Shown here piece by piece: positions 26,329-58,275 of a stretch of DNA of 64,000 nt. Both the position numbers and the translations under genes were made by a program. Under the pieces are notes generated by a model. It was given only the letters and a program-made list of their open reading frames with translations. It made no database searches and was not told the DNA's origin. The stretch lies in the sequence record PP496439.1; one strand, given 5' to 3'. Position 1 is the first letter of the stretch; every line of letters starts with the position of its first letter.

Positions 26329-26502
26329 ATGACCAACATAGTCAACTTCCCGAAGAAGGATACCACTGAGCCGGAGAGTACTGAGCTTGTGCTGAACGAT
26401 CAGCAGATGGATGAGTTCGAACGTAATCTGGAGCAGCGGCCTCCCGAAACCAATCTGTCACTTCAGCGCTTGCTAAGGCGCCCTACCCGCTGGAAGGAGT
26501 AG
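26329..26502 (+). CDS. 57-aa protein resembling only the C-terminal toxin-binding half of TacA/AtaR (DUF1778) antitoxins (absent from the ORF track)
   Basis: AGGTGA RBS; LVLNDQQMDEFERNLEQRPPETNLSLQRLLRRPTRW; no RHH domain; no GNAT toxin nearby. Confidence 0.7.
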   Translation: MTNIVNFPKKDTTEPESTELVLNDQQMDEFERNLEQRPPETNLSLQRLLRRPTRWKE

Positions 26503-26505
26503 ATT

Positions 26506-26805
26506 ATGCCGGACTGCTTTGTGGTACATGCCGAAGCGATGTACGAAGCCCCTGTACCCATCAAGGTGTTCCGGCGCAAGTACAAAGCCAAACTCTTCAT
26601 CAAAGAACTACGCGCGTATCATGCGCAGCGTCCCGTCTTACCCTCCACGTTCAACGAGTTAGGTGTGGGGTATCCCGAAAGCATCTACGCCGCGCACATG
26701 GATGCGTACCACATGGATCACATGGACTGGTCTAGTTCCCATCCGGCGGGTATGGCCGGAGAAGGTGCTGACGACTTCACATTCACCCAATTACCTTTGG
26801 AATAG
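26506..26805 (+). CDS. Small hypothetical protein, paralog of 25408-25650
   Basis: AGGAG RBS; shared motifs as above. Confidence 0.75.
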   Translation: MPDCFVVHAEAMYEAPVPIKVFRRKYKAKLFIKELRAYHAQRPVLPSTFNELGVGYPESIYAAHMDAYHMDHMDWSSSHPAGMAGEGADDFTFTQLPLE

Positions 26806-26808
26806 AAA

Positions 26809-27906
26809 ATGAACGATGATCTGAAAATCACAGAGGTTAACTCTGTGAAGGAATACGATGAACACGTAAGAAACCTGCTGGTTACCTTGTTGGGGCTCGG
26901 TTCTTCCGCCACCCGCAACGATCAAGGTACCCGCAAGCTCGGCGCCACGTCGATCAGCTTCAACCTGCTGTCGATGTACCCCTCGATCCCGATGACCACG
27001 CTACGCCCGATCTCGTGGGCCAGTATCCTCGGTGAGATGCTGGGTTTCATCCGGGGTGAGACCAATGTCGAAGCGTTCAAAGAACTGGGCACCAAAGTCT
27101 GGAATGCTAACGCTAAGGAACCCGCGTGGAAGAGCAATGCACTCGCACCTAACGAAGGTGACCTCGGACCAATCTATGGCAAGCAGTGGCGCAAGTGGGA
27201 TGACATCAAGGTAGCCCCCTATGACACTGATCTGTCCACGCTGGGCTACACAAAGATGGGCCGTCTGGACGATGAATTGGGATGGGAGACCGTAGGACTA
27301 CCGCTTAACGCGGTGTGGCGTCGTGAGGTTGACCAGTTGATGGAAGCCTTGAACCGCATCAAGGCCAACCCCAACGACCGCCGTGCCGTCATCTCGGCGT
27401 GGAATCCCGGTGACATGGATTTCATGGCTCTGCCACCCTGCCACGTGATGATGCAGCTGACCACGGTGCCTTACGCCCAGCACAAGTACGGCAGCTACAC
27501 AGATGGGGTCAACGAATACGAAGCTGACATCGAGGTAGTACCCGAGTTCGTACTCAATCTGGTCGTGACCCAGCGCAGCCAAGACACTCTGCTCGGTCGA
27601 GCGTACAACATCCCGGCGTATGCTACCCTGCTTCGCCTGTTCGCTCACCTGTTGGAAATGGCGCCGGGCAATCTGGAGTTCAACGTCGGCGACCAGCACC
27701 TGTACAGCAACCATGGGGCAGCCGCCGACGAGGTAACTTGCCGAGAAAGTCTGGACAAGGATGAGGAAGGCGAAAAGCTATTCCAACTCTCTATCGTCGG
27801 CGTGGACAAGTTCGAAGATTTGGACACCCTCACCGCCGACAACTTCATTCTGACTAATCAGGTTACGCATGGTAAGTTGGAATCCGACACCAAGATGACT
27901 GTGTAA
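26809..27906 (+). CDS. thyA: Thymidylate synthase
   Basis: DLGPIYGKQWR, NPNDRR, ALPPCH, QRSQD...YN (dUMP-specific Asn), GDQHLY. Confidence 0.93.
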   Translation: MNDDLKITEVNSVKEYDEHVRNLLVTLLGLGSSATRNDQGTRKLGATSISFNLLSMYPSIPMTTLRPISWASILGEMLGFIRGETNVEAFKELGTKVWNANAKEPAWKSNALAPNEGDLGPIYGKQWRKWDDIKVAPYDTDLSTLGYTKMGRLDDELGWETVGLPLNAVWRREVDQLMEALNRIKANPNDRRAVISAWNPGDMDFMALPPCHVMMQLTTVPYAQHKYGSYTDGVNEYEADIEVVPEFVLNLVVTQRSQDTLLGRAYNIPAYATLLRLFAHLLEMAPGNLEFNVGDQHLYSNHGAAADEVTCRESLDKDEEGEKLFQLSIVGVDKFEDLDTLTADNFILTNQVTHGKLESDTKMTV

Positions 27907-27917
27907 GGGGAATCGCC

Positions 27918-28655
27918 ATGAGCACCAATCCACCAATCAACGCCCGTATCCTCAACCTGAAACCCCGTTCCGTTCAAGTCTACGACTTGATTCTGGACGA
28001 CACGGATGATCGCACACTGCCCGAACAGATGCGAAGCGTGCTTCAAGGCATCTTCGACGACCATCCTGTAACCGAATATGGTGAGAAGAGTACGGTTATC
28101 GACACCGAGCACCTGACCAAAGCAACCATCGTCGCCGTGATCTACGACCCGAGCATCCGCGTCGCCTATTTGGTCGGGCAAGAGCGTCGGGACGAAATGA
28201 TCTCCGGCGTGTTCCCCGGTTCGCCGGCTAACCCTGACTTCTATCTGAGCACCGACGCTCAAGAGTGGACGTCGGCCTTCTTCAACATCAACGGCAACTG
28301 CCTGAAAGAACTGACCGAAGACACGTTGTTCGGCTGGTTCGCCAACGCCATCGAGCGTGGCAAGTCAGACGGCATCAGCGATACCTACAACACGCTGGGT
28401 ATCGTTCAGCCCGGCCTGCAAGGTATAAAGAAGGGCATCCCGCTGATGTCCCTGATCGAGGCCGGCATCATTCCGCACACTGCGTACTGGTCTGATCCGC
28501 AGGCGCCTGAATACGTCAAGTGGCTGGAGAAGCAAGGCCGGGTCGCTAAGCTCTGCGCACACGCCGACGCCATTGCGGCAGACGGCGCGGCAGCCCTGCT
28601 CGACGAGAAGCAGTCGTACGAATCTATCAACCCAAAGGAAGAGAAGGAGTCCTGA
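27918..28655 (+). CDS. Hypothetical protein
   Basis: GGGGA RBS; strong phage-like codon bias. Confidence 0.75.
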   Translation: MSTNPPINARILNLKPRSVQVYDLILDDTDDRTLPEQMRSVLQGIFDDHPVTEYGEKSTVIDTEHLTKATIVAVIYDPSIRVAYLVGQERRDEMISGVFPGSPANPDFYLSTDAQEWTSAFFNINGNCLKELTEDTLFGWFANAIERGKSDGISDTYNTLGIVQPGLQGIKKGIPLMSLIEAGIIPHTAYWSDPQAPEYVKWLEKQGRVAKLCAHADAIAADGAAALLDEKQSYESINPKEEKES

Positions 28656-28657
28656 TT

Positions 28658-29668
28658 ATGCAACAGTCATCTGGCCGTCAAGAGTTGTTCCTGACCCGCC
28701 CGGAAGAAGTACGGGTCCATTACATCGCCAACGGTGAGTCGGTAGACGAAGCCATGGTCGAAGTCCGGAAGATGTACCCCGGCATTCGGTCCCCGGACTA
28801 CTGGGTCACCCCCGGAGAAGACGCCACAGTTATCCTGATCTATATGCGCAGTGGTCAGGTAATCGTGGTGGACAACGAACATCTGCCGCGCTTCGTTATT
28901 CAGATTCCGCTGCGCGCAGACGGGTGCTTCGCCGTATCCCCAGACCATATCAATGGTATCGTCGAAGACCACGGGATCATGTTCGGTAACTTCGAGAACA
29001 ACACCGTCGCCAGCCTCAAGGTGAAAGGCACCGCGTTCCGAGTCCAAGGTGAATCCGGCTGCATTGATCCTGCTGCGTTCCGACATGACCTCGGTGAAAC
29101 GTACGCCATCGAGAATGCCAAGGACAAGATGTATGCGCTGGAAGGTTATGCGCTGGCACGCATGCTGGGGCTGGCCGGATTGACCACGGTGGATACCACT
29201 GCCGAGTACCAGACGGGCTTCACCCTCGATGGCAAGCAACAGATCATGTTCCCCGACTACGCCACACGGGAACCAGACGGGGGTATGGACATGGACGAGG
29301 TGGAAGAAGGCATTGATCAGACTACCGAGTGTCTGAACGCAATCGTCCGAGCGGCTGAGAAGTGCTGGAGCGCAACGGTAGAGAGCGGCGGCGACCGGAT
29401 GACGCAGGCCGTGGTGTTCCCCGGATTGCACGATGAATTGCTTCAGAAGGAAATGGGCACCTATCTGCTTGACCTAAATGGTCGCGTGCAGGAAGTCACT
29501 GAGAACAAAGCCATGTTCTTCCAGTGCACCATCCCCGGCAGGCACGGTATCCATCTGGTCCTGATGAACAAGGAGATCGGTGCGACGATGTATCCCGGCG
29601 AAGATGGCTACTTCCAGTTGTCTCGGAACTTCCCGATGACCAACTGCTTCGTTACTGACCTGCCGTAA
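28658..29668 (+). CDS. Multidomain protein with a central N4 Gp49/Sf6 gp66 (PF13876)-like domain
   Basis: VSPDHINGIV...FRVQGESGCIDPAAFRHDLGETYAIENAKDKMYALEGYAL fits GES.C..P..F...G...A..NA..K...LEGY.L. Confidence 0.75.
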   Translation: MQQSSGRQELFLTRPEEVRVHYIANGESVDEAMVEVRKMYPGIRSPDYWVTPGEDATVILIYMRSGQVIVVDNEHLPRFVIQIPLRADGCFAVSPDHINGIVEDHGIMFGNFENNTVASLKVKGTAFRVQGESGCIDPAAFRHDLGETYAIENAKDKMYALEGYALARMLGLAGLTTVDTTAEYQTGFTLDGKQQIMFPDYATREPDGGMDMDEVEEGIDQTTECLNAIVRAAEKCWSATVESGGDRMTQAVVFPGLHDELLQKEMGTYLLDLNGRVQEVTENKAMFFQCTIPGRHGIHLVLMNKEIGATMYPGEDGYFQLSRNFPMTNCFVTDLP

Positions 29669-29727
29669 TAGGCCTGTTCTAGCTACTTCCAAGTATTGAA
29701 TGAATAGTTTTTCACTTGGAGGTAGCT

Positions 29728-30138
29728 ATGAAAAGCCGGGTAGGGATTCCGGTCGGGGAAACCTTGGTTTTCGAAGACAGGACCAATGCCAACAATCTTG
29801 GTCAGCTCTATAAGATCACCGTTAAGAATGTGACATTCCACCACATTCAAGGTGAACTTGCCCGGACCGTCGAATTGTGTATGGAGATTGTGGATGGGAA
29901 AGGTGTTGTCGCTCGGCAACAGACTTTCTTCACCCAGCAGAACAGTCCTTTCCCGTTTGGTAAGCTCTCGCTAACCGTGGGGATGGTCAGCAAGTCAAGA
30001 GTCAGCAAGTCCATGGTAATCCTGGCCTGCATTCACCCGCACTGGATGAAAGTGTACCCGGAGAACCAAAGCTTCCCGCTCACCACGCGGGACGTGATCA
30101 ACCATGAGCCTGAGTTGAAAGCCCACGCATGTGTATAA
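29728..30138 (+). CDS. Beta-rich hypothetical protein with weak CsrA-like segments
   Basis: GGAGG RBS; PVGETLVFED and VILACIHPHWMKVYPEN are reminiscent of CsrA ends. Confidence 0.65.
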   Translation: MKSRVGIPVGETLVFEDRTNANNLGQLYKITVKNVTFHHIQGELARTVELCMEIVDGKGVVARQQTFFTQQNSPFPFGKLSLTVGMVSKSRVSKSMVILACIHPHWMKVYPENQSFPLTTRDVINHEPELKAHACV

Positions 30139-30150
30139 GCAGCGACCCAC

Positions 30151-30180
30151 GCCCGCCCCGGTAGCCCCGAGGTGGGCTTT
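30151..30180 (+). terminator. Terminator-like hairpin, near-duplicate of 15339-15372
   Basis: GCCCGCCCCGGTAGCCCCGAGGTGGGCTTT. Confidence 0.6.
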
Positions 30181-30219
30181 CCCGTTTTAGGGTCTTGGAA
30201 AATATTTTATACTGCCCAC

Positions 30220-30248
30220 TTGACACTATGAAATATACCTGACATAAT
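30220..30248 (+). promoter_or_regulatory. Sigma70-type early promoter (TTGACA-17-CATAAT, TGn)
   Basis: Direct inspection; AT-rich upstream region. Confidence 0.75.
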
Positions 30249-30337
30249 GGTGCCATGCTGGGGCTTCATGGGCTGGTAAACAATGATGCCAGCAACCCCA
30301 CCATCACCACTACCGATGTCCTTTAGGAGATGCACCG

Positions 30338-32260
30338 ATGTCCAATACTTCCAAGGTTACCGCGCTGTCCACCTTCAAGATTTCCAAACTGACCCAATCG
30401 ATTTTGGATATCCTGAAGAAAGATGGCTCGATGTCGCTCAGCGAATACGGCGAGCTGCCGTTGCAGGTGGGTTTGGCAACCGAGGTATTGCTTCACGCTG
30501 ATTGCCCCGCCAATACAGTGTTCAGCATCAAGGGCCGTTCCGTCGGTCGCTACGTTGAACTGACTCATCTCGATGTGGCCGACAAGATCAAGCCGGACCC
30601 ACTCGCCAGCATCGGTGCCACCAGCGCCGCTCAGGTACCCGCAGCATTCGACGGCGAAATCAAACTGATGTATCTCGCCATCCCTACTACCACCGAAATG
30701 GATGCAGACGGCCTGCTCGAATACGTCGAAGAGATGATCGACACCATTCGCGAATCGCTCGTTTCCGAAGGCTACTCCCCCGAGGAGCGTGAGACGCTGA
30801 TCGGCGTGCACAAAGACTTCGTCGAGCATACCAGTGAAGTGCACGTGTTCATCGATCTGGACATCCTCGAAGATGCGAAGTACAGCGTCACTCTCGATGA
30901 GTACTTCGAAGCTGATGCCTACGAGAAGTTCGACAGCGACGAGTACGACGAGAAGTATCGCTTGCCTGAACTGTTGCGCGGCCTGCCAGATGACGTCATG
31001 CTGCAACTGGCGGCGAAGCTCGACATCAAGAAGGGCACCACCAAGAAGTCGAAGCTGACCACGGCCAGCATCACCGAGGCCATCCTCAAGCTCGACACCG
31101 AAGTCGTCAAAGCGGCCATCTCCGAGCTGATCGATCCGGCTGCTGTCGAAACCACGGAAGGCGCCGACGCCGACTTGGCCGAGACCCTCAGCGGCTTGAC
31201 GGCCAAGCAACTGCGTGAGGTGGCAGAGCACATGGAGCTGGAAGTCGGCAAGAAGGACAAGTCCGAAGCCATCACCACGCTGATCCTCGCCGAAGAAGAA
31301 GGCGACGTGATCGATGCACTGGACGCACTGGGCTTGCTGGAAGATGAGACCCCGGAAGGCGGCGGTGTTTCCGAGGAAGAATCGTTGGAGGACATCCTGA
31401 AAGGTCTGGACGACGCCGACGTTCGTGCCACGGCCAAAGCGTTGAAGCTGACCGTGCCGAAGAAGACAACGCTGGAAGGTGTTATCGCCCTGTTGCTGGA
31501 AGAAGATGCGAACGACGTAGCGGAAGCGCTGGTTGATCTGGGCTTCGTCGAAGCGGAGGAAGAAGAGGAGCAACCGGAAACTCCACCGGCTGACGACGAG
31601 GAAGAAGAGGAGCAGGAAGAAGAGGAGGAAGAGGAACTCGACACCGTGGAGCTGGAGAACGCACTGGCCGAGCTGGACGTTGACCAGATGATCGAAGTGG
31701 CCGAGACGATGGAGCTGGAGCTGCCGAAGAAATCGACACTGGCAACCCTGACCAAGGTGATCATGGACTCCGTGACCGACGCTGCAACGCTGGAAGCGGC
31801 GACCGATGCAGTGGGCGAAGCGGCTGGCGAGGGTGAGGAAGGTGAGGGTGAGGAAGGTGAGTCGCTGGAAACGTTGTACAGCGTGCTGGCCGATCTGAAG
31901 GCAACCCGTGGCAATGCGGCAACCCGTAAGGAAGCACTGGCCGAGATGTCGGAAACCGACTTGACCGAAGCCAAGCGCAAAGACGTGGTCGCCCTGTTCG
32001 CCATCGCCGAGATGACCGAGCTGGACGAAGACGCTCAGGAGTTGATCGCTCGACTGGCCGGTGAAGAGTCGGAGCTGAACGAAACCGTGCTGGGTTACTT
32101 CACCAAGGTGTTCGCCAAGCTGATCGCTGACGACGCCCCGGAAGAAGTGGCAACGCCGAAGCCGACTGGCAAAGGTAAATTGGCAGGCACTGTCACTGCC
32201 AACGCAGCCAAACCGGCGGGCAAGGGTCCAACCACCCGCAAGCCAGCCAGCAAGAAGTAA
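30338..32260 (+). CDS. Very acidic 640-aa protein with 4-5 helix-extension-helix (Rho-N/SAP/LEM-like) repeats
   Basis: Repeats such as LSGLTAKQLREVAEHMELEVGKK, LKGLDDADVRATAKALKLTVPKK and LAELDVDQMIEVAETMELELPKK; poly-E linkers; AGGAG RBS. Confidence 0.85.
   Translation: MSNTSKVTALSTFKISKLTQSILDILKKDGSMSLSEYGELPLQVGLATEVLLHADCPANTVFSIKGRSVGRYVELTHLDVADKIKPDPLASIGATSAAQVPAAFDGEIKLMYLAIPTTTEMDADGLLEYVEEMIDTIRESLVSEGYSPEERETLIGVHKDFVEHTSEVHVFIDLDILEDAKYSVTLDEYFEADAYEKFDSDEYDEKYRLPELLRGLPDDVMLQLAAKLDIKKGTTKKSKLTTASITEAILKLDTEVVKAAISELIDPAAVETTEGADADLAETLSGLTAKQLREVAEHMELEVGKKDKSEAITTLILAEEEGDVIDALDALGLLEDETPEGGGVSEEESLEDILKGLDDADVRATAKALKLTVPKKTTLEGVIALLLEEDANDVAEALVDLGFVEAEEEEEQPETPPADDEEEEEQEEEEEEELDTVELENALAELDVDQMIEVAETMELELPKKSTLATLTKVIMDSVTDAATLEAATDAVGEAAGEGEEGEGEEGESLETLYSVLADLKATRGNAATRKEALAEMSETDLTEAKRKDVVALFAIAEMTELDEDAQELIARLAGEESELNETVLGYFTKVFAKLIADDAPEEVATPKPTGKGKLAGTVTANAAKPAGKGPTTRKPASKK
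31829..31861 (+). repeat. 15-nt in-frame tandem repeat (GAGGGTGAGGAAGGT x2.2, EGEEG)
   Basis: Direct inspection. Confidence 0.8.
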
Positions 32261-32280
32261 CTGACTGACCCGCAGCAACG

Positions 32281-32307
32281 TGCCCCGGTTTCGACTGGGG
32301 CATTTTT
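32281..32307 (+). terminator. Rho-independent terminator
   Basis: TGCCCC/GGGGCA stem plus T5. Confidence 0.8.
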
Positions 32308-32340
32308 CTCTCAAGCCCAACTGTCCCATTGAGGTGATCC

Positions 32341-32754
32341 ATGTTCAAGCATTATGTGTCTGGTCCTAGCAGTAACGAAACCGCCGATCTTCCCCCTCAC
32401 CTGGATCACTGGTATAAGCACTCGATCAAGGTGCTGCGCATGCTGTGGACGGTTAAGTCAACCCCCGAGCAGATGAAGGAGCGTCGGGTAGCTCATGGAT
32501 CTATCGAGCTGACGGAACTGAAATCTCAGGAAGGCGAAGAGGTAGGAATCCACGGGTACACGTACCCGATGCCAGACCGCTACCTGATTCACATAGGTAA
32601 CTGGGCGGTGTATCGCGGCAAGCATCCGAGCAACGAGATCAGGGATTGGCTGCACCCGGACCATTCCCATGAGGTGTACGAGTTCACCACGATCAATGAA
32701 GCATTTGCCTTCCTCGCCCTTTTCACCGCCGACAAGATCTGCGTCCAACGCTGA
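32341..32754 (+). CDS. Hypothetical protein
   Basis: CTGTCCCATTGAGGT leader/RBS. Confidence 0.75.
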   Translation: MFKHYVSGPSSNETADLPPHLDHWYKHSIKVLRMLWTVKSTPEQMKERRVAHGSIELTELKSQEGEEVGIHGYTYPMPDRYLIHIGNWAVYRGKHPSNEIRDWLHPDHSHEVYEFTTINEAFAFLALFTADKICVQR

Positions 32755-32783
32755 TCCACTCCCTGTCCCAATGAGGTGTCACC

Positions 32784-33020
32784 ATGCCAATGTCATTCCC
32801 AGATATGCAGTCCCTGATCAACCGTGCCGAACAACGAGGCTTCCGTCGCCCGCTCAAAGCGGAAACCGAAGAGGAGTTCCGCAACGCGCTGGCAGACCAC
32901 ATGCTTCACATCGACCGGGTGGAATCCGCGGAGATCCGTTCGGGCAAAGGCTGGGACCAGCAAGACCAGCGCTCCATGCTGTCGGCCATGGGAATCGATC
33001 TCAAGGATTTTGAGCTGTGA
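32784..33020 (+). CDS. Small hypothetical protein
   Basis: CTGTCCCAATGAGGT leader/RBS. Confidence 0.75.
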   Translation: MPMSFPDMQSLINRAEQRGFRRPLKAETEEEFRNALADHMLHIDRVESAEIRSGKGWDQQDQRSMLSAMGIDLKDFEL

Positions 33021-33310: not shown

Positions 33311-33318
33311 GGTGACAC

Positions 33319-35274: not shown

Positions 35275-35283
35275 TCGAACCTG

Positions 35284-35315: not shown

Positions 35316-35368
35316 CGTCTCCAGCGTCCGGTAAATGAGACGTATAAATCCACACTGGAGTCAATACA

Positions 35369-42362: not shown

Positions 42363-42962
42363 ATGATCAACGACTGGATCATCACTCATTCTGGCAAGCG
42401 CTTCGAACTGGCCGACCCCAGGCCGGAGATGGTGTGCATCGAAGACATTGCCATCGCGTTGGCCCGTCAGACCCGCTTCAACGGGCACTGTGACCGGTTC
42501 TATTCCGTGGCTATGCACTCGTACATCATCTCCAACCATCTTCCCAAGCACTTGCGACTGGAAGGTTTGTTGCATGACGCGGCGGAGGCCTATATCGGTG
42601 ACATCAGCAGCCCGCTCAAGAAGATCATCAAGGCACATTGGCCGGGGTTCAAGGCATTCGAAACCCGTATCGAGGAAGTCATCTTCGATGCGTTGGGCGT
42701 GCCGTTGACCAATGATCCGATGATCAAGGAATACGATCTACGCATGCTGGCCGTGGAACATCGTGACCTGATGCCTAAGACGGAACATGAATGGTCTATG
42801 TTGGTGGGTGTTAAACCCTTGTCCGATGTATTCCCTGAAAGGGAATCACTCGACGCGCAGCTAACGTCTCGATCTATGTACCATCCGGAGGTTATGGCTC
42901 CGACTTTTATCAAGACGTTTAACTATCTGAAAGCCAAGGGTTGGCACTTACCTAAAATCTAG
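42363..42962 (+). CDS. HD-domain 5'-deoxynucleotidase (YfbR/YfdR-like)
   Basis: IEDIAIALARQTRFNGH...YSVAMHS, LLHDAAEAYIGDISSPLK. Confidence 0.88.
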   Translation: MINDWIITHSGKRFELADPRPEMVCIEDIAIALARQTRFNGHCDRFYSVAMHSYIISNHLPKHLRLEGLLHDAAEAYIGDISSPLKKIIKAHWPGFKAFETRIEEVIFDALGVPLTNDPMIKEYDLRMLAVEHRDLMPKTEHEWSMLVGVKPLSDVFPERESLDAQLTSRSMYHPEVMAPTFIKTFNYLKAKGWHLPKI

Positions 42963-47287: not shown

Positions 47288-47289
47288 CC

Positions 47290-47760
47290 ATGACCACCCG
47301 AGTCCGGCCACAAGGTACAGACATTCCGTTGTCCATTCGCTTCGGCGTGCGGGCAACCCTCTTGATGAACAACGTTGCAGCCGCTCTGGTTAAGTACCGC
47401 AACAATGTCGTAGCTCTAGCCTTCGCCGGACTACTCGCGACGTGTACTTACCTGTATCTGGATAACAGCTGCATGCGCCGCTGGGAAGGTGTACCGGTAC
47501 AGACCCGCTGGGCATGGGGTGAGTGCCAAGTCAAGGTAGATGAGCTGTGGCGTGAAGAAGGGTTCGCCGTCAACTACCTGAAAAGCAAGTTCGCAAGGGA
47601 CGGGTTCTTCATCCTGTCCAGTAGTGCCATCTACTCCGAGGAATTCCAAGAGCTGGATGTGCACAGCCGGGGAAAACACCTGGCACCCGATGTAACCCCG
47701 GAACACTCACCTACCGATAAACCCGCAAAGGAACAGACCAATGCTTCTTCAAAACACTGA
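47290..47760 (+). CDS. Single-TM membrane protein
   Basis: VVALAFAGLLATCTYLYL hydrophobic segment. Confidence 0.65.
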   Translation: MTTRVRPQGTDIPLSIRFGVRATLLMNNVAAALVKYRNNVVALAFAGLLATCTYLYLDNSCMRRWEGVPVQTRWAWGECQVKVDELWREEGFAVNYLKSKFARDGFFILSSSAIYSEEFQELDVHSRGKHLAPDVTPEHSPTDKPAKEQTNASSKH

Positions 47761-48829
47761 TAGCATTCACGAACAGATGGGCGAGACTGCTGAATCTCGC
47801 GTCCAGCACCTGATCACAATGCTGACCATGCAGTACGCTAATAACCAGATCCAGCACGACCCTTGCTGGGCGCACTTCGACAACTCGGTTCGCGCCGATT
47901 ACCGCATGGCTCTTATCGAACTGGGTGAAGTGTGGGATCACCTGCCGTCCGGCCAATGGTGGAAGAAGGGCGACCAGACCGAAGCTTTCCTCAATCTGGA
48001 GCAACGTGATCAAGCGGCGCTGGAGATCGTGGATGCGATGCACTTTGCTCTAAGCCACACCATCCGCAACTACATCGACGACCCAGACCACACCGTGATG
48101 GCCGAGGTCATCCCTGACATCGCCTCGTTGATCGCCAGCGTCAGCATGCAGGCATCGGTCGTGTACGAAGACTTCCTGCGCGGTGACTTCACCGTTGAAC
48201 AGATCATGGGTGAGTTCAACTCTCTGATCGACACGGCCATCATCAATACCAACTTCGAGGTGTTCCCGCTGGACTCGGTTATCGTGCCGTCCAACCTGTT
48301 GGGTAACGGCACGCACCAGAGCTTCACCAACTTCTGGTCGAGCGTGTTCCTCGCACTGCATCTGCTGGACTACAGCTTCGAGCAGGTCGTCGCGCTGTAC
48401 GTCACCAAGAACCGCCTCAACACCTTCCGCGTTAAAAACGGTTACACCAAGAAGGCCGGTGAAGACCGTTATATCAAGTTGGCGTATGATGGAGGTTCTG
48501 ATACCGTCCCAGTCGAAGACAACCATCACGTCCCGGCCATGGCCCGTTCGGCAGCAGAGGCTACTGCACTGCGCGGCAGCGACTTGACGATGGAGATCGA
48601 CAACGCCATCATTGCGATGTACCGTAACCGTCTGGCGCAGGTGTGGGGCGTGATCGATGCTATCTCTAGTCGCTCAATTGCTGCGACTCAGGATGCCTTC
48701 CCCGCTCATTGGCTGTTGCCAGTCGGTGGCTGGAACCTGGTTAACACCCAAGATGGCTTGGGGTATCACAATACTGATACGGAAGAGACGATCGTGTACC
48801 AAGGCGTGCACCCGCACTTCGTCAAGTAA
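47741..48829 (+). CDS. Dimeric (all-alpha) dUTPase family protein
   Basis: MQYANN, IELGEVWDH...WWKK, LEIVDAMHFALS, YVTKNRLN.FR..NGY. Confidence 0.85.
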   Translation: MLLQNTDSIHEQMGETAESRVQHLITMLTMQYANNQIQHDPCWAHFDNSVRADYRMALIELGEVWDHLPSGQWWKKGDQTEAFLNLEQRDQAALEIVDAMHFALSHTIRNYIDDPDHTVMAEVIPDIASLIASVSMQASVVYEDFLRGDFTVEQIMGEFNSLIDTAIINTNFEVFPLDSVIVPSNLLGNGTHQSFTNFWSSVFLALHLLDYSFEQVVALYVTKNRLNTFRVKNGYTKKAGEDRYIKLAYDGGSDTVPVEDNHHVPAMARSAAEATALRGSDLTMEIDNAIIAMYRNRLAQVWGVIDAISSRSIAATQDAFPAHWLLPVGGWNLVNTQDGLGYHNTDTEETIVYQGVHPHFVK

Positions 48830-49472: not shown

Positions 49473-49516
49473 TAACCACGGGGATCGAAAGGTCCCCGAC
49501 CCTAAGAGGGTGTATC

Positions 49517-49876: not shown

Positions 49877-49920
49877 GCTACTTCTTGAGAGTTCGCCCCT
49901 ACCCCAAAGAGGATTGTACC

Positions 49921-51317: not shown

Positions 51318-51375
51318 CCCCATCCACTAAGACACCGGTAAATGAGCCGGTGTCCTACCGCTTACCGAGGTAACC

Positions 51376-51699
51376 ATGAGTACGCCAGACACTGACCAAA
51401 CCACTGCGGATGTCGAGGCAGTTGTTGTTCGACTTGAACGTGGGAATGATAAAGACGGAAACCCCGTTCATTACTTCCTGACGTACCGAGGCAAGGATGT
51501 TCCGATGGGTGAACGTGAGGTTCGTACCACGGCCAACATCAAGCACGCCTTCCGCTTCAACACGGAAGATGAGGCAGTCGCTGCCACGCAGTCGGAAGGC
51601 TTCCAGCAGTTGGTCGCCAAGATCAACCGGTCCGGCCCCGGTGTCACCAACGTGACAACGCCGAAGATGAGCATTCGTTACGCTCTGCTTCCTGAATAA
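51376..51699 (+). CDS. Hypothetical protein
   Basis: GAGGT RBS. Confidence 0.75.
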   Translation: MSTPDTDQTTADVEAVVVRLERGNDKDGNPVHYFLTYRGKDVPMGEREVRTTANIKHAFRFNTEDEAVAATQSEGFQQLVAKINRSGPGVTNVTTPKMSIRYALLPE

Positions 51700-51749
51700 C
51701 CAAACCCAATCTCAATAGCAACGTCTAAAGTCCCGATAGGAGTTACACC

Positions 51750-53402
51750 ATGACCGTTCCAGCACGATTCGCAGCAGCAGAAGCAAAACTTTACGTCGGC
51801 AACAAGGCTGACAACATCCGTATCCAGCTGAAAGGCAACGTTGCCTTGATTCAAGGCTGGAAGGACGACAAGGAAGATACCGAAGTTGCCCGCGAGGAAT
51901 TCAAGACCGCCAAGGATTTGACTGACCTGATCAAGTCGGCCCGCAACGAAGTCAATGCCCCCGACGGCCAGATTCGTGTGGTCAGTGACGACGCCAGCAT
52001 CATCGTCATCGATCTGGATACTGAAGCGGAAGAGATCCGTAGCTTCGGCAAGTCTGGAGCCAAGCTGTTGGACGCTCTGATCACGCTGGCTAAAGCGGAA
52101 GAAATCGAAGGTGAAGCGGCTCGCGGTCAACTGGCAGATAAATTGGCCGAAGCGTTGGCTAAGCCTGAGTCGGACCAAGGTGAAACCGCTGTGGAAACCG
52201 TAGCAGGCAAGCTGACCACTGCACCGGCCACTGGCACTGACCTTGTCGGAACTCCGCTCAACTCCCCGGTACAAGGCGCGGGTATTGAGTTGAAACAGGA
52301 AGCTGATGCACAGGGTGACGAACTCGGTCTGGTCGAAACCATGGAAGAACAATTCCAGCATCCCGGTCTGGTTCACCGCTTTGGTTTCCCGGCTGGCATC
52401 ACTCTGGGTGGCGCCGTGGATGTGACCCTGCCAGATGGTAGCGTTACCGAGCACTACACTTTCTCTGACATGGACGGTGACCCCGCCGACGACAGCGCTG
52501 AAGGTACCGTGTTCGTCGAAGTGCGTACCTACGCCACGGATGCAGACGAGGAAGCGGAAGACGATCGCATCTCGCTGGAACTGCCGACCCTCACCGCGAT
52601 CAATCGTCTGCTCAACCTGATCGAGACGTACGGCGACGAACTGAAATTCAACATGGTGTCTTTGCTAACGCTGGACGTGCCCGCCCTGGAACTGGAGTAT
52701 CGCTACGCCCCGGACAAAGGCAAGCTGACCAGCAAGATCCGTGTCGAGTTCGCCGAAGCCTTCATCGCAGACCTTCGCGCCATAGCTGTACCAACGTACA
52801 CCCCGTTCGATCTGCGCATGCACGGCGAGTTCAGCTACGAAGACTTCGCCCACGTCACCAGCAACTACGCAGCCTCGTTGAGCGCCCGCTGCCGCAACTC
52901 TTCCCCGGCAGCTGTCCTGACCGGCAAGATCGAACTGATCGGCTGGGCAACGCTGGTGGTAGATGGTGAGCCCGTCACTCTGATGTTCGATGGTGCATCC
53001 GCCAGCAACTCCCAAGGTGATGAAGTTACCATGCAGGTAGCAGTGGCCCAACTGCTCGCCGCCGACAAGATCACGTTCTTCCCCGACACCCGCTTGATGA
53101 AGATCGCCAAAGCGTCCACCGCCAAGGACAAGTCTTTCGGCCCGGAAGCACTGACAGGTATGGCGGTCAAGCTTAACGGCAAGGATGAAGGAATCATCTA
53201 CACCACCAAGGGCTTGGGCACCCTGCTCAACAACTTCCATCAGACCCAAGTGGCCGCAGTCACCGAGGAAGTGAAGAAGGTGAACGAGCTGGTTGATACC
53301 GAACTCAGCATCGTCTTGAGCGAGCTGATGGTTGATCTGCCGCAGGACGTCCCTGAGAAGAAGATTAAGTCGGTCCAAACCAAGCCTCGCATCATTAAGT
53401 AA
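51750..53402 (+). CDS. Large acidic hypothetical protein
   Basis: AGGAG RBS; strong high-expression codon bias. Confidence 0.85.
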   Translation: MTVPARFAAAEAKLYVGNKADNIRIQLKGNVALIQGWKDDKEDTEVAREEFKTAKDLTDLIKSARNEVNAPDGQIRVVSDDASIIVIDLDTEAEEIRSFGKSGAKLLDALITLAKAEEIEGEAARGQLADKLAEALAKPESDQGETAVETVAGKLTTAPATGTDLVGTPLNSPVQGAGIELKQEADAQGDELGLVETMEEQFQHPGLVHRFGFPAGITLGGAVDVTLPDGSVTEHYTFSDMDGDPADDSAEGTVFVEVRTYATDADEEAEDDRISLELPTLTAINRLLNLIETYGDELKFNMVSLLTLDVPALELEYRYAPDKGKLTSKIRVEFAEAFIADLRAIAVPTYTPFDLRMHGEFSYEDFAHVTSNYAASLSARCRNSSPAAVLTGKIELIGWATLVVDGEPVTLMFDGASASNSQGDEVTMQVAVAQLLAADKITFFPDTRLMKIAKASTAKDKSFGPEALTGMAVKLNGKDEGIIYTTKGLGTLLNNFHQTQVAAVTEEVKKVNELVDTELSIVLSELMVDLPQDVPEKKIKSVQTKPRIIK

Positions 53403-53460
53403 TTCAAGCAAGGACAATCAGGCCATGGATGGCACTCACGGACAACGCAGGGTTAGTAAA

Positions 53461-54213
53461 ATGAAGGTTTCTACGAAACGACGTATTCTCTACTGGGCAC
53501 CATCGGTACTGGTTCTGCTGGCGTCAATGTCACTGGTCGGTCTCGCTGCCCACGCCAACACCGCGCGAGCTGATGAGATGGCGCCACCTATGAACTCTGA
53601 AGTTCACCGGGCAGCAATGTCGGTACAAGCGGCGCAGGGGTTCAATGGTAATGCCAGCCCACTGACGCTGGATCGCCAGGCCTATCCGTCGGACGTCAAA
53701 GCCAAGATGGACGAAGTGATGCGTCAGTGTCCAGTGGACGGCTCGCTGAAACAGGTGCGACTGTTCCGCTATTCGGAAGGTGAAGTCCCCTCCCCGAGTA
53801 TGTTCGACGCCATCTGTAGTTTGCTGGTTCTGCCACCCGACGTGTACCACAAGACTGATCCGATGCAGTGGCGCAAGTTTACGCAGAAGGTTACCCCGGT
53901 CAGCGCCGAGATCCTGATCGAAGTGGATTCGAGCAAGCCTCAGGATGAGAAGGCGCGCTTCCTGTTTCAGCAGGTGCTGAACAATCCCGACTGGTTCCAA
54001 CTGGTCGAAGTGAAAACCATGAAGGTGAAGGGCACTGCGCTGGAGCGTACGGTGATCTTCCAGATCCAGCAATCGGTAGGTGTGTATTACGACATGCTGG
54101 CGGCGTACGTTAGCCAACAAGGTAAGCCTGTCGTCGAACCCATCCCGACTATCCAGAGCGGGAGCCGCAGCACGGACAACCGACCCATCACCATGTTGAC
54201 CGAACAGAAGTAA
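53461..54213 (+). CDS. Exported hypothetical protein
   Basis: Basic N-region, hydrophobic core and AHA/ARA cleavage site; alternative start at 53425. Confidence 0.7.
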   Translation: MKVSTKRRILYWAPSVLVLLASMSLVGLAAHANTARADEMAPPMNSEVHRAAMSVQAAQGFNGNASPLTLDRQAYPSDVKAKMDEVMRQCPVDGSLKQVRLFRYSEGEVPSPSMFDAICSLLVLPPDVYHKTDPMQWRKFTQKVTPVSAEILIEVDSSKPQDEKARFLFQQVLNNPDWFQLVEVKTMKVKGTALERTVIFQIQQSVGVYYDMLAAYVSQQGKPVVEPIPTIQSGSRSTDNRPITMLTEQK

Positions 54214-54248
54214 CCTGAAACACCCACTGTCCCAATGAGGTATCTACC

Positions 54249-54611
54249 GTGAATAAGTTTACCGATTTCAAGAAAGAAGGTCAGATAGTACGTATGCTCC
54301 CCGACTGGCCTGCTAAGCCTGCGTTCGTTCGTCTAAAGGAAAGACCGGATACAGATGATCTAATCCCTGTTGACTTCTCCTGTACACTGATGTCACTGCC
54401 TAAGTCTTTCACCCTCCCGATTGTGACTGAAGATGGTAGCCACCACGTACTACGAACGGGCATCAAGGCCTACGCTCGCATCGCCGCTTTCATTCAGATG
54501 AGTGGCCCCTTCAAGGGTAAGGATGTGGGCTTCCGTGCGCAGGCTGATCAAGCCCGTGCTTTCAAGCTGGCCGACCTGGTACAGCGCAACATGATCAAGT
54601 ACGGGAAATAA
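54249..54611 (+). CDS. Hypothetical protein
   Basis: CACTGTCCCAATGAGGT leader/RBS, GTG start. Confidence 0.75.
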   Translation: MNKFTDFKKEGQIVRMLPDWPAKPAFVRLKERPDTDDLIPVDFSCTLMSLPKSFTLPIVTEDGSHHVLRTGIKAYARIAAFIQMSGPFKGKDVGFRAQADQARAFKLADLVQRNMIKYGK

Positions 54612-54614
54612 GAC

Positions 54615-55646
54615 ATGCGCAATCAAGACATGGACAAAGTGGAACTGCACGTAGCCGTGACCGATGAGATTCAAGGTGCTTTCACCGACGGCACAAAAGA
54701 TTACCGGGGTTGCACACGCGAACGTATCGAAGATACCCGTGCCCTGATCAAACGGTCTTACGTGTCGCTGCGTGAGGTTGGTTACTGGCTGGTCAAAGCG
54801 TTCGGTGTGGAGACTGCCCATGACAAGAAGGAGCGTGTCTACCGCTTCACCGAGGAAGCTCTGGAGCTGGGGCAAGCCACGGGACTGACAAAGGAAGAAG
54901 CACTGGCGCTGGTGGACTACGTATTCGAAAGGCCTGTCGGGGAAATCAAACAGGAGGTAGGCGGCGTGATGACCACTCTTGCGGCACTGTGCTTCGCCCA
55001 CGAGATAGATCACCACGAATGCGGGCGCATCGAGCTGGACCGTGTTCAAGATCCTGCTGTACTGGAAAAGATAAGGATCAAGCAAGCCAACAAGAAGATT
55101 CGCAGTCCGCTGCCGGGCATCGTGAAAGAAGAGTGCCAAGCGGAACCGTCACTCAAAGGTTTCGATCCAGTGTGTTCCTGCAAGGAGTGCGAGGTTATTC
55201 GATACGGCCATCGACACTCTCAACCGCAGAAACAAGCGGTGTCCTACGTGGAAGACGTGATCGACAAGTTGAAAGCCGATCAGGTGGCTGGGCACACCGG
55301 GGTTACTCTGGTGGTCGTCCGCACCCTGATGGCGATTAACCGGATCAGGGAAGCCATGGACGATAAGGGCACCGTGTGCGTCGTAAGAAAGATGGGGGAC
55401 TTTGAAGGCGCAATGGGCAGTGTTGAAGGGTTAAGGGAAGGAGAGCAACTGTACATCGTAGGCACCAAGGGTATACTGTGTGCCGGATGGTCGCTGATCA
55501 CCCCCTTCGATGTTCGCGTGTACAGCACCTGCCCGCTAGGGGATGACCACTACGTCCAGCTGATGGCGCGCTGGTTCAAAGACGGAGTGCGGACACTTCC
55601 GGTCTACCACTATGTTCCGGGCCGCACAGACAATCCCGGACTGTAG
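54615..55646 (+). CDS. MazG-like NTP pyrophosphatase domain protein with a C-terminal accessory domain
   Basis: ERVYRFTEEALELGQ...LVDYVFERPVGEIKQEVGGVMTTLAAL. Confidence 0.75.
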   Translation: MRNQDMDKVELHVAVTDEIQGAFTDGTKDYRGCTRERIEDTRALIKRSYVSLREVGYWLVKAFGVETAHDKKERVYRFTEEALELGQATGLTKEEALALVDYVFERPVGEIKQEVGGVMTTLAALCFAHEIDHHECGRIELDRVQDPAVLEKIRIKQANKKIRSPLPGIVKEECQAEPSLKGFDPVCSCKECEVIRYGHRHSQPQKQAVSYVEDVIDKLKADQVAGHTGVTLVVVRTLMAINRIREAMDDKGTVCVVRKMGDFEGAMGSVEGLREGEQLYIVGTKGILCAGWSLITPFDVRVYSTCPLGDDHYVQLMARWFKDGVRTLPVYHYVPGRTDNPGL

Positions 55647-55701
55647 TTCTTAATTACAGCGGTCCACTACGGGCTTTATACAATCCGATGGAGATAAGAT
55701 C

Positions 55702-56220
55702 ATGGCTTCGAAAAAGCGTGGCAACACCCCCGTTGCAGAATCCACTGGCGCTGGTACGCCGGTCACCGAAAACGAAAAGACTTCACCCAACCTGATTCAG
55801 ACCCAGATTCCTTCGGCTGAGTCCAGTGCGGAGAAGATCGCTGAGTCCGATGTTGCGCCGACCGGTGAACCCGTTCAAGAGCGACACGAAGGCCAGCACG
55901 AAGATTCGGTCAGCTCGGAACAAGTTGGTGATCTGGCTTCCATCATGGGCAACGGAGACACCGCCAAGCAAGACGCCCCAGTGGAACAGGATCAGTCCGA
56001 GGACACCCAATCGGAACCGCGTCAAGAAGCTACCGAAGCCGGTATCGCACTGGCCGACAAGATCTCGGAACTGGAAACCAACGGTGACACCGCTGAAGAG
56101 CTGCGCCACAAAGTCAGCGGCGAAGGTGGCATCATGGATCAGTTGAACAAGCTGGCTGAAGGTAGCGAGCGTGAAGAGCTGACCCAGCGTGCACAAGCAA
56201 TTCTGGTTAACCGCGTCTAA
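55702..56220 (+). CDS. Acidic, largely disordered hypothetical protein
   Basis: GGAGA RBS. Confidence 0.8.
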   Translation: MASKKRGNTPVAESTGAGTPVTENEKTSPNLIQTQIPSAESSAEKIAESDVAPTGEPVQERHEGQHEDSVSSEQVGDLASIMGNGDTAKQDAPVEQDQSEDTQSEPRQEATEAGIALADKISELETNGDTAEELRHKVSGEGGIMDQLNKLAEGSEREELTQRAQAILVNRV

Positions 56221-56233
56221 ATCTTCGGCGCGC

Positions 56234-56275
56234 AAAAAACCCCACTCGCGTACATCACGGGTGGGGTTTTGTTTT
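56234..56275. terminator. Bidirectional terminator between convergent genes
   Basis: AAAAAACCCCAC...GTGGGGTTTTGTTTT. Confidence 0.8.
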
Positions 56276-56358
56276 ATCTACAGTACGGCTTCGCAGGCTA
56301 GCGTGTGGGCGCGTTGGCTATCCCAGCCCGGTCGATATGGCCCCAAGCCGGGGTAAAC

Positions 56359-56380
56359 CCGCCTGCGTGATCCTACGCGG
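56359..56380. repeat. 22-nt exact direct repeat, copy 2
   Basis: Identical to 15414-15435; overlaps the endolysin stop codon. Confidence 0.85.
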
Positions 56381-57047
56381 CCAGTGCGGCAGCGGCGATA
56401 TCCCACAAACGCTTCCGGTCGTCCGCGCCGATCTGACCGCCGTTGATGGCCTGGGTCACATCGAAGAAGCGCCCGGCATCAGCCAGCTTGTTGCAGTTGT
56501 TCTCATCCCAGTAGTCGGCAGCTGCCATGAAGCCTGCTTCGGGCAACGCCAGCAGATCCGGGTTGTTGATGAGTGGGATACCCAGCTTGTTCTGCAACTT
56601 GAGGTACTCCGCTTTGCCGGTACGCATGATCGGGCAACGACCTCGGTACTTCCACCCGTCACCACTCGCCTCGTCGCCGTTACCCATGCGGTTCGCATAA
56701 CAGTTGTTGGCGATGGCCTGGGGTTTGCGCGCCAGCTTGATCGCCAGTGCGTTAGGTGCAACGCGTACTTGCCCTTTGTCGTTGGTTATCTTGACGCGCT
56801 TGCCATTAGCGTCTACCAACCCGTAGCGAGTCGGCCAGGTGTTTGCCAATCCGTCGGCGCTGTAGTTCAAGCCTTCCTCGAACTTGGCAAGGTCACCCGA
56901 CTCATGGTCGATCTGGCCGAGGAACATCGCCATGCGTTGCTTGTTAAGGCTGATCAGGTACTTGTCCATGGCAGCTTGCAGTGGCTTAAGATAAGCCATG
57001 GGCGCCGACGGGAAGATTTTCTTGAATTGCAATTCAGTAAGCAGCAT
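56373..57047 (-). CDS. Glycoside hydrolase family 19 endolysin
   Basis: FLGQIDHESG, EGLNYS, YANRMGNGD..SGDGWKYRGR, INGG motifs; GGAG RBS favours ATG 57047 (57062 alternative). Confidence 0.9.
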   Translation of the reverse strand: MLLTELQFKKIFPSAPMAYLKPLQAAMDKYLISLNKQRMAMFLGQIDHESGDLAKFEEGLNYSADGLANTWPTRYGLVDANGKRVKITNDKGQVRVAPNALAIKLARKPQAIANNCYANRMGNGDEASGDGWKYRGRCPIMRTGKAEYLKLQNKLGIPLINNPDLLALPEAGFMAAADYWDENNCNKLADAGRFFDVTQAINGGQIGADDRKRLWDIAAAALAA

Positions 57048-57375
57048 GGGGTACATCTCCATTGTTCAGGGTAGACAACATTGCCTGCCAGTCTCCGGTG
57101 TTGGGCATTCCATCTTCATGGAACCGGAGGGGCACGACGGGGTGAATGGATAAGGCGTGGTCACGCATTCGCAGCAGAATGGTATCGATGGCCGTGTCAA
57201 CGGACTCACCTCGGTATTCCATTCGTTGCAGTATCTCTTCCCGGAACATACGGAACTGCTCCGGTGGGAAGTTGTACTCAAGACATCGGGCGTGGATGTC
57301 AGCCTTATTCCTCTGGTAGTACGTGACCATTGCGGTAACCCTCGGACATCTGGGGGTGTTGCGTGTTTTGCTCAT
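57034..57375 (-). CDS. Hypothetical protein co-transcribed with the endolysin
   Basis: GGAGAGGGAG RBS on the minus strand; overlaps the endolysin start; no TM segment. Confidence 0.7.
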   Translation of the reverse strand: MSKTRNTPRCPRVTAMVTYYQRNKADIHARCLEYNFPPEQFRMFREEILQRMEYRGESVDTAIDTILLRMRDHALSIHPVVPLRFHEDGMPNTGDWQAMLSTLNNGDVPHAAY

Positions 57376-57507
57376 TGCTCCCTCTCCATGAGGTGTGCTA
57401 AGTGGATGACGGACAGATTAATAATTATTTTGATGTCGCTCGGAATTACGCAAATGGCAGGCTGTAAATAGCTGTAAAATCCAACCACCAATAGCAAGGA
57501 CCTTAGC

Positions 57508-58275
57508 ATGGGCTCTATTCTCTATACCCACCGTCAGATCGTCAATACTCCCAACCTCCGTAAGGAAGCCCGTGAAAGCAAGAGCTTCAAGGAGTACAGC
57601 AAGACCGTCGCGAAGAAAGCCAAGCGCTTGCCGATTCCGGTCCTGTATGTAGACGGCACCCCTACCACCGAACAATTCAGCCGCCTGCTGAATGACCGCT
57701 TGATCTTTCTGGTGTGCTTGTTCCCCCCGACCGCCAGCATCGAGAAGCTTACCGAGCTGTCCAAGGTGTTCAGCAGCCAGCCGTGGTATCTGAACATCAA
57801 CAAGATCAAGGTGTACCAGCTGGACGGCTGCATGGTGACGCGCACCAACCAGACCACCAAAGAAACCACCGAAGAGTTCGACTTCCGTACTGCGCAGATG
57901 TACGCCGTGCAAGAGATCGACAAACTGCTCAACACGCAGGAAGGCCAGATTCTGGCGGCGGCTCAATGCCGTATCGTACCAGAAGGCCAGCCGGACACAT
58001 GGGCACAAGGCGGTGGTGTCACCACGAAGCTGCAAGGCGCACCCGCTGACCAGCAAACCAGCCTGAGTGTTGGTGGGAAGTCGGCGGCAGAGATTCAGGC
58101 GGGTGTGTCCGAAGGTGAAGCGCAGGATGAAACGGAGTATCTGCTTAGCACTCCGGCTAACGCTGAACGTCTTCGCCGGTCCATCGCTGAATTGAGCCGT
58201 AAACCTATTCGCGGTCTTGACGGCAAGTTCATCAAGATGGACCAATCTTCGTTCAAGAAGGAGGACGGGGAATGA
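57508..58275 (+). CDS. Hypothetical protein carrying a C-terminal YefM-antitoxin-like segment
   Basis: AAGGA RBS; ETEYLLSTPANAERLRRSIAEL at 58129-58194. Confidence 0.8.
   Translation: MGSILYTHRQIVNTPNLRKEARESKSFKEYSKTVAKKAKRLPIPVLYVDGTPTTEQFSRLLNDRLIFLVCLFPPTASIEKLTELSKVFSSQPWYLNINKIKVYQLDGCMVTRTNQTTKETTEEFDFRTAQMYAVQEIDKLLNTQEGQILAAAQCRIVPEGQPDTWAQGGGVTTKLQGAPADQQTSLSVGGKSAAEIQAGVSEGEAQDETEYLLSTPANAERLRRSIAELSRKPIRGLDGKFIKMDQSSFKKEDGE

Follow-up and report, generated by a model that had tools for sequence, protein, structure and literature searches.

In solved complexes of the YefM-YoeB toxin–antitoxin (TA) pair, helices α3 and α4 of the antitoxin YefM lie on the concave β-sheet of the YoeB ribonuclease and cover its catalytic site. 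Among phage proteins, Dmd of T4 binds and blocks a host TA toxin. For Staphylococcus aureus YefM, residues 1-40 have been described as the DNA-binding domain and residues 41-83 (α3, α4 and β4) as the part that wraps YoeB and blocks the catalytic site, with hydrophobic contacts named for T51, Y53, L54, L64, I68 and L71, and a conserved salt bridge to YoeB formed by E50 (PMC7544224). Phage ICP1 has an antitoxin mimic directed against DarTG (PMC11481870), and T-even phages encode AdfN, an orphan homolog of DarG1-like NADAR antitoxins; a 2025 report presents it as the first case of a lytic phage using an antitoxin homolog for counter-defence, and adds that the bioinformatic detection of orphan antitoxins of type II is difficult (PMC11825919). 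Here we analyse a stretch of 64,000 nucleotides (the window), which corresponds with 100% identity to bases 1-64000 of Pseudomonas phage vB_PpuM-Amme-1 (PP496439.1), a lytic myovirus of 202,198 bp from Estonia that infects P. putida KT2440/PaW85. Its gene Amme1_00073 (57508..58275, plus strand), an annotated coding sequence of 255 amino acids (aa), carries near its 3' end a short cassette (58105..58200, residues ~200-231, boundaries accurate to about one codon) that corresponds to α3-α4 of YefM.

The homology of residues 200-231 to α3-α4, the segment that wraps YoeB, is confirmed by several unbiased sequence comparisons. In Pfam, residues 201-231 align to positions 43-73 of the 74 positions of PF02604 (PhdYeFM), with E=0.0015 and 18.7 bits, which is below the curated cutoff of 29.8 bits; the NCBIfam YefM equivalog matches the same residues with E=9e-4 and 19.3 bits, compared to a cutoff of 121. 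When the protein is used as a query against the sequences in the PDB, the six top hits are all YefM chains, always matched in their C-terminal part, one of them a chain of 38 residues. Searching with the last 63 aa alone, we found that all 13 proteins that share words with the query, among 5.8 billion, are PF02604 antitoxins of 84-108 aa, the best E-value against the full database being 3e-3. In an alignment of the Amme-1 segment with ten YefM proteins, 14 consecutive residues of the cassette are invariant. The N-terminal dimerisation and DNA-binding domain of YefM (roughly profile positions 1-41) is absent, since the Pfam and NCBIfam alignments cover positions 43-73 only and that of our own YefM hidden Markov model (HMM) positions 42-74 only. 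A preliminary description of this DNA had proposed a YefM-like neutralisation segment stripped of its repressor domain, and on this point the Pfam, NCBIfam, PDB and 63-aa searches agree.

The gene context of the relatives indicates their partner toxin. Nearly all of the 25 plasmid matches listed (of 176 records) lie in annotated Phd/YefM genes, many of them beside Txe/YoeB genes; the genes adjoining the closest YefM carry PF06769, and a YoeB-like open reading frame (ORF) lies directly downstream in 41 of the 45 closest bacterial loci. Judged by these neighbourhoods, the partner toxin of the closest YefM relatives of the cassette is YoeB. The residues named for the S. aureus complex can be located in the cassette as well: in a HMMER alignment E50, T51, Y53, L54, L64, I68 and L71 correspond to E208, T209, Y211, L212, L222, I226 and L229 of Amme1_00073, and all seven are identical.

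No toxin gene accompanies the segment. We examined this question in the whole 202-kb genome, beyond the window, with YoeB and YefM HMMs built from fetched bacterial genes, the YefM model serving for exclusion and for the comparison with other phages, not as proof of homology. In the six-frame translation, the YoeB HMM (positive control E=7.5e-42) found no YoeB-like ORF (best E=1.6), and the YefM HMM found no YefM N-terminal domain, its single match being Amme1_00073 itself. The toxin screen comprised the YoeB and ItaT families and the record's own annotation. The earlier claim that a cognate toxin is missing from the 64 kb thus extends to all 202 kb, where nothing YoeB-like or ItaT-like was detected by six-frame HMM search and the sole annotated GNAT protein, Amme1_00177, resembles RimI/YpeA. 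By these searches the cassette is an orphan, with neither an adjacent nor a distant recognisable yoeB gene in Amme-1.

Eight sister phages, with DNA identities of 87-97% to Amme-1 (Lauda, Pori-4, Voja-6, KoPa-5, Aura, SKa-4, Illi-2 and Peetri), allowed us to view the cassette in its natural variants; counts out of nine refer to Amme-1 together with these eight. Orthologs of Amme1_00073 are present in all nine, and protein and DNA alignments of the orthologs separate three C-terminal forms. In Amme-1, Voja-6, KoPa-5 and Peetri (form A), both the cassette and the final 24-residue tail are present. In Aura and Illi-2 (form B), 93 nt comprising the cassette are missing in frame and the tail is retained; in Lauda, Pori-4 and SKa-4 (form C), the cassette is absent and the tail is mostly deleted as well, with a 5-base microhomology at the deletion junction. 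The 31-codon segment thus behaves as a portable cassette, whose presence or absence in the sister phages amounts to a clean in-frame indel of 93 nt. Its G+C content at third codon positions, 0.50 compared to 0.70 for the gene, is over 32 codons a weak hint of foreign origin.

The remainder of Amme1_00073 appears to be the recipient of this insertion. An N-terminal α/β domain (residues ~1-151, 57508..57960) is nearly invariant in all nine phages, and codons 1-150 differ between Amme-1 and Peetri by 37 synonymous and 14 amino-acid-changing codons. The domain belongs to no Pfam or PHROG family, and scans of IMG/VR and metagenomes returned no relatives; a tblastn search found a homolog in Vibrio phage vB_VcorM_GR11A (E=1e-5). 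Its near-invariance together with this homolog argues that the cassette is an add-on to a protein with a function of its own. A linker rich in Gly, Gln and Ala (residues ~152-199, 57961..58104) connects the domain to the cassette; it is modelled without secondary structure and with a predicted local distance difference test score (pLDDT) below 50, and is thus probably disordered. In the Peetri ortholog, about 17 codons of the Gly-rich linker are duplicated in tandem immediately before the cassette. The terminal tail that follows (residues 232-255 and stop, 58201..58275) belongs to the recipient protein, not to the cassette. In the low-confidence AlphaFold2 model of the whole protein, a long stretch without structure is followed by helices at residues 208-212 and 216-230.

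The segment is not confined to the relatives of Amme-1. With the 36 residues of the cassette region as a tblastn query, 134 of 50,697 phage records gave a match, 129 of them from Pseudomonas phages. Four of the matched records are the Amme-1-like carriers, and about 120 are other Pseudomonas phages, mostly of P. aeruginosa and, among the matches listed, 90-95 kb in size. The two of these that we inspected, EM and PS3, belong to Pakpunavirus and have the segment inside proteins of 197 and 213 aa; for the EM protein, EM_124, the depositors' annotation reads "YoeB-like TA antitoxin". A further four matches are 96-kb P. putida phages of the same collection as Amme-1 (Amme-3, KoPa-4, Roomu-2 and NoPa). 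In the one inspected, the 217-aa protein Amme3_00072 starts with an uncharacterised N-terminus, followed by the YefM-like α3-α4 segment at residues ~61-102 and then, at residues 111-215, by the N-terminal domain of a dATP/dGTP diphosphohydrolase (PF18909, E=4e-19); part of an antitoxin is here, unusually, joined to a nucleotide hydrolase. Our YefM HMM assigns 29.8 bits to the PS3 protein, 26.6 to EM_124 and 24.7 to the Amme-3 protein, and does not match the cassette-less Aura ortholog at all; for EM_124, the aligned region also takes in part of the YefM N-terminal domain (HMM positions 13-74). The flanking sequences of the three contexts (Amme-1-like, Amme-3 and Pakpunavirus) are mutually unrelated, and in EM, PS3 and Amme-3 the 1.2 kb to each side of the segment contain no yoeB ORF. 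A literature search found no paper describing YefM-like segments in these phage proteins.

Taken at face value, this recurrence leads to a wider proposal, which we put forward tentatively and consider possible rather than probable: that Pseudomonas myoviruses repeatedly take only the helices with which YefM grips YoeB and graft them onto phage proteins of unrelated kinds, thereby forming a portable "antitoxin tail" class of anti-TA factors that is invisible to whole-domain annotation. The sites of the graft would be the tail of a conserved protein in the Amme-1-like phages, a position before a nucleotide hydrolase domain in the Amme-3-like phages, and the interior of a protein of ~200 aa in Pakpunavirus. 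A separate observation concerns the record of a Synechococcus "phage", Ssp-JY41 (20 kb), in which a complete YefM/YoeB pair lies beside ParA and a RepA-like initiator, and which looks more plasmid-like than phage-like.

For Amme1_00073 itself, our preferred reading, to which we assign a probability of roughly 0.5, is that of a conserved phage protein with a tail cassette that descended from YefM and acts as a toxin-binding antitoxin mimic. The labile host antitoxin would no longer be replenished after the phage shuts down host expression; the tail of Amme1_00073, judging from its homology and its retained contact residues, would then, during infection, capture YoeB-type toxin that is free in the cell and take the place of the depleted antitoxin. 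Counter-defence by the cassette is in this sense only something we infer from the sequence. The P. putida host does possess a lethal yefM-yoeB pair, PP_2940-2939, in which the antitoxin could not be deleted (PMC7280312).

A number of observations weigh against this reading and should be set beside it. The structural model of Amme1_00073 has low confidence (mean pLDDT 41.6). Our YefM HMM, which gives Amme-1 48.9 bits, is biased towards it because the members were chosen for sharing the motif. The named polar contacts are identical in only five of 11 cases, and the β4 strand of YefM, which also contacts YoeB, has no counterpart in the cassette. Phd/YefM antitoxins are moreover known to pair with several toxin folds, and one could therefore imagine that the segment binds another RelE/ParE-fold protein, or acts as a dimerisation helix, rather than binding YoeB. 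The missing β4 and the differing polar positions would fit such a partner, as would the participation of α3 in dimerisation in S. aureus YefM (PMC7544224). We nevertheless consider it quite unlikely, as the toxin paired with the closest relatives is specifically YoeB (41 of the 45 loci above) and the Glu that forms the salt bridge to YoeB (PMC7544224 for its role) is retained.

Further points against the preferred reading come from the distribution and evolution of the cassette. It is dispensable, as five of the nine sisters do without it. Between Amme-1 and Peetri, the most distant carriers, seven of its codons differ by amino-acid-changing and four by synonymous substitutions, a ratio that may point to relaxed constraint. 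The sampled YefMs revealed no donor in Pseudomonas, the closest of them coming from Rhizobiales, Chloroflexota, Methylococcaceae and Verrucomicrobia, and the DNA-level donor search gave at best 78% identity over 63 nt. The earlier proposal that the phage lineage harvests the antitoxins of its hosts is not borne out by these relatives, none of them from Pseudomonas and none above 78% at the DNA level. Finally, all 67 of 67 phages, including the five cassette-less sisters, plate equally on the wild type and on a strain lacking 13 TA systems, yefM-yoeB among them, the latter being also the strain on which the phages were isolated (bioRxiv 10.1101/2024.03.26.586772). Equal plating implies that the YoeB of this host imposes no restriction, and that the cassette is not needed against it, in those conditions, so that any benefit would have to arise in other hosts or other conditions. 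If the segment does bind YoeB, it might help to explain why chromosomal TA systems frequently lack an anti-phage effect, an explanation that is weakened by the cassette-less sisters being equally unaffected by the TA systems of the host.

Several of these observations would also be accounted for by a neutral relic, that is, a cassette that entered a disordered tail by illegitimate recombination and persists there without function. Its presence in only four of nine sisters, the indel-prone nature of the tail (the Peetri duplication and the microhomology deletion in three phages), the seven to four ratio of codon changes and the lack of a TA-linked plating phenotype (bioRxiv 10.1101/2024.03.26.586772) are all compatible with this view. 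We find it unlikely on two grounds: all seven core contacts and the 14-residue core are unchanged between Amme-1 and Peetri, even though seven other residues of the cassette differ, and a one-off accident does not explain how the same part of YefM came to lie in three unrelated protein contexts of Pseudomonas myoviruses. The probably disordered surroundings of the graft, as modelled, could also be read differently, in that the graft might copy the protease-labile region of YefM, and either compete for the host protease that degrades YefM or destabilise its own protein. Beyond the modelled disorder this is speculation, and we regard it as very unlikely, given that the conserved residues are those of the toxin interface and no known degron, and that nothing points to a protease.

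The immediate surroundings of Amme1_00073 fit its orphan status. The downstream neighbour Amme1_00074 (58272..58685, plus strand, 137 aa) overlaps the stop of Amme1_00073 by 4 nt. It has no Pfam, NCBIfam, PHROG or meaningful PDB match and no match to the YoeB HMM, and an annotated gene occupies this position in every fetched sister locus, whether the cassette is present or absent; by these comparisons, it is not a recognisable toxin. A promoter and terminator scan around Amme1_00073 gave nothing that exceeded the shuffled expectation.

The preliminary description had placed the YefM-like segment in a larger counter-defence repertoire, together with a second antitoxin tail resembling TacA, a small alarmone hydrolase (SAH) and a putative signal sponge. 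The second tail was assigned to Amme1_00029 (26329..26502, plus strand), an annotated gene of 57 aa that is present in four of the nine sisters (Amme-1, Pori-4, Voja-6 and KoPa-5). With 11 synonymous and four amino-acid-changing codons between Amme-1 and Voja-6, it is a genuine small accessory gene under selection; its neighbours are unrelated small ORFs and ThyA. The resemblance to TacA is unproven by sequence. TacA1 is the only Pfam match with E<=1, covering positions 44-77 of 80 at 13.4 bits against a cutoff of 21, and its E-value of 0.075 is within chance, considering that some 50 proteins were scanned. What this match amounts to is a weak, co-linear and not significant correspondence between the last ~35 residues and the C-terminal toxin-binding part of TacA/ItaR (DUF1778, PF08681); as only TacA1 positions 44-77 are aligned, the ribbon-helix-helix domain is absent. 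No NCBIfam family matches the protein, and neither the single sequence nor a family profile (at E<=10) finds a match in the PDB.

We examined the DUF1778 connection using ItaR/ItaT of E. coli BL21(DE3) as the DUF1778/GNAT test pair, with locus tags taken from PMC6125619. When the 57-aa family and the ItaR family are compared by hhalign, the match spans 18 residues, at the C-terminal end of both, and has a probability of 8.8%; the ItaR-family HMM does not report Amme1_00029 at E<=10 in the six-frame genome. The same HMM does match, by its tail and with E=0.0045, an antisense ORF of 74 codons (genome 171006-171227, minus strand) opposite the Amme1_00201/00202 region, which we take to be a chance match rather than a DUF1778 homolog and used as a control; that it outscores Amme1_00029 indicates how easily a Leu/Arg-rich helical tail gathers spurious matches. 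Since two ItaR-seeded IMG/VR scans gave only close relatives (66-83% identical), this test of TacA likeness covers Pfam and one subfamily. On the toxin side, the ItaT HMM found no ItaT-like ORF in the 202-kb genome (best E=0.22), and there is no TacT/ItaT-like GNAT: Amme1_00177 (genome 150662-151486, minus strand, 273 aa, 125 kb from Amme1_00029) has an N-terminal extension of ~130 aa and was rejected as a TacT/ItaT-type toxin on the basis of the PDB search.

An exhaustive search of 1.84 billion proteins returned one meaningful outside relative of Amme1_00029 (E=6e-5), a 115-aa protein, P0018, from a phage-like metagenomic contig, which itself has no Pfam match, TacA included; a second match, to ten short stretches of a 2137-aa protein, was disregarded. 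The word-index search returned the 57-aa protein alone, and pattern scans of IMG/VR and metagenomes returned nothing. We also set aside tblastn matches in a Rhizobium phage (on a non-coding strand) and in plasmids (in-frame C-terminal tails of major facilitator superfamily transporters) as due to chance. P0018 is tiled jointly by Amme1_00028 and Amme1_00029, which lie in different frames at 26091..26502 on the plus strand (blastp of its N-terminal part against Amme1_00028 E=1.6e-6, of its C-terminal part against Amme1_00029 E=1.7e-11), and if the two are counted as one gene, it is interrupted once. In Voja-6 and KoPa-5, the small gene is present without this upstream partner, and since it is under selection, it may work independently. 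The N-terminal domain of P0018 is modelled as three strands and a helix, not as a ribbon-helix-helix, at low confidence (pLDDT 50.6); at such scores, here as for Amme1_00073, we used the secondary structure alone, since fold matches would be meaningless. The region in which these genes lie (25408-26805, between the gene for the small subunit of ribonucleotide reductase (RNR) and thyA) is mosaic, and three layouts of it are seen in the sister phages: ORFs of 80, 144, 76, 57 and 99 aa in Amme-1, of 80 and 62 aa in Voja-6, and of 144, 109 and 99 aa in Lauda, Aura, SKa-4 and Peetri. The gene of 109 aa is unrelated to the pair of 76 and 57 aa.

The remaining members of the supposed repertoire fare no better. 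Amme1_00051 (42363..42962, plus strand), the sole HD protein in the range, matches phrog_318, annotated as deoxyribonucleoside 5'-monophosphate (dNMP) phosphatase, with E=2e-58. It has weak YfbR-like and HD_3 matches and matches PDB 2gz4 (E=1e-11), gives no match to RelA/SpoT or Mesh1 at the thresholds applied, and is located among genes for DHFR, ThyA and RNR. By homology, it is thus an HD hydrolase of the dNMP phosphatase type acting in nucleotide metabolism, as the depositors annotated it, and not the SAH that had been proposed. As for the signal sponge, a Pfam scan of the ~45 proteins encoded at 25.4-61.3 kb contained no match to a sponge family and thus no candidate. Three phages carry both the 57-aa gene and the cassette, Pori-4 has the gene without the cassette and Peetri the cassette without the gene, and such independent distributions argue that the two do not form a system. 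That TacA-tail and YefM-tail mimics, alarmone hydrolase and sponge would constitute a single counter-defence strategy is therefore highly improbable, and largely refuted for three of its four parts. In its favour remain the reality of the YefM part, the fact that TacA1 is the only Pfam match of the 57-aa protein and falls in the C-terminal part of the profile, and the hhalign match of its final 18 residues to the C-terminus of ItaR; opposed to these are a TacA signal within chance, exceeded by that of an antisense ORF, the lack of a TacA match in P0018 and of any PDB match, the modelled attachment of the P0018 tail to a different kind of domain, and the findings on the HD protein, the sponge and the gene distribution. 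What stands of the preliminary description is a YefM tail without a cognate toxin.

Some further features of the phage were recorded along the way. Within the window, 10001-12000 has a GC content of 0.46 compared to ~0.55-0.57 in the rest, and may be a foreign insert. Amme1_00033 (28658-29668), annotated as hypothetical, matches Pfam Phage_gp49_66 (the N4 gp49 / Sf6 gene 66 family) with residues 110-168 (E=5e-11). Amme1_00060 (47741-48829, 362 aa) contains a dUTPase_2 domain, of the all-alpha nucleoside triphosphate pyrophosphohydrolases (E=1e-15), and its neighbour Amme1_00058 weakly matches nucleoside 2-deoxyribosyltransferase. Between ~158 and 198 kb of the genome, the annotation lists two QueC-like genes along with QueE-like and GTP cyclohydrolase genes, a set that suggests 7-deazaguanine modification of the Amme-1 DNA and would be consistent with the large number of nucleotide-metabolism genes, the HD dNMP phosphatase included.

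Compared to YefM of YefM-YoeB (PF02604; PDB 2a6q, 6l8e), the Amme-1 cassette is alike in its alignment to α3-α4, its seven of seven core contacts and its relatives beside yoeB, and differs in lacking the N-terminal domain, β4 and a yoeB gene, and in scoring below the Pfam threshold; where the antitoxin is a protein of ~84 aa, the segment is embedded in a phage protein of 255 aa. The Pakpunavirus proteins of EM (EM_124) and PS3, as well as Amme3_00072, share the α3-α4 motif and have unrelated flanking domains. With T4 Dmd and the ICP1 mimic, the likeness lies in the proposed mode of action, in which a phage protein blocks a host TA toxin released during infection. To our knowledge, those two proteins show no recognisable homology to their cognate antitoxins, in contrast to the Amme-1 cassette. 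AdfN resembles our case in being a homolog of a bacterial antitoxin in a lytic phage without a toxin gene of its own; it is, however, an entire enzymatic domain that reverses the product of the toxin, following a type IV logic, and is experimentally proven, whereas the cassette of Amme-1 is a short type II binding segment known from its sequence.

If this segment does bind YoeB, modules of counter-defence can be far smaller than a domain, and be hidden in "hypothetical proteins". The material for addressing this is at hand: the host strain, a strain devoid of the 13 TA systems and the complete set of phages are available (bioRxiv 10.1101/2024.03.26.586772). The sister phages offer natural variants distinguished precisely by the cassette, and there are parallel cases in ~125 other Pseudomonas phage records. 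Protein blockers of TA toxins were thus already known from phages, as was, in AdfN, an orphan antitoxin domain in its entirety; what the Amme-1 locus adds is a type II antitoxin represented by its ~31-residue binding segment alone, inserted in frame into a phage protein.

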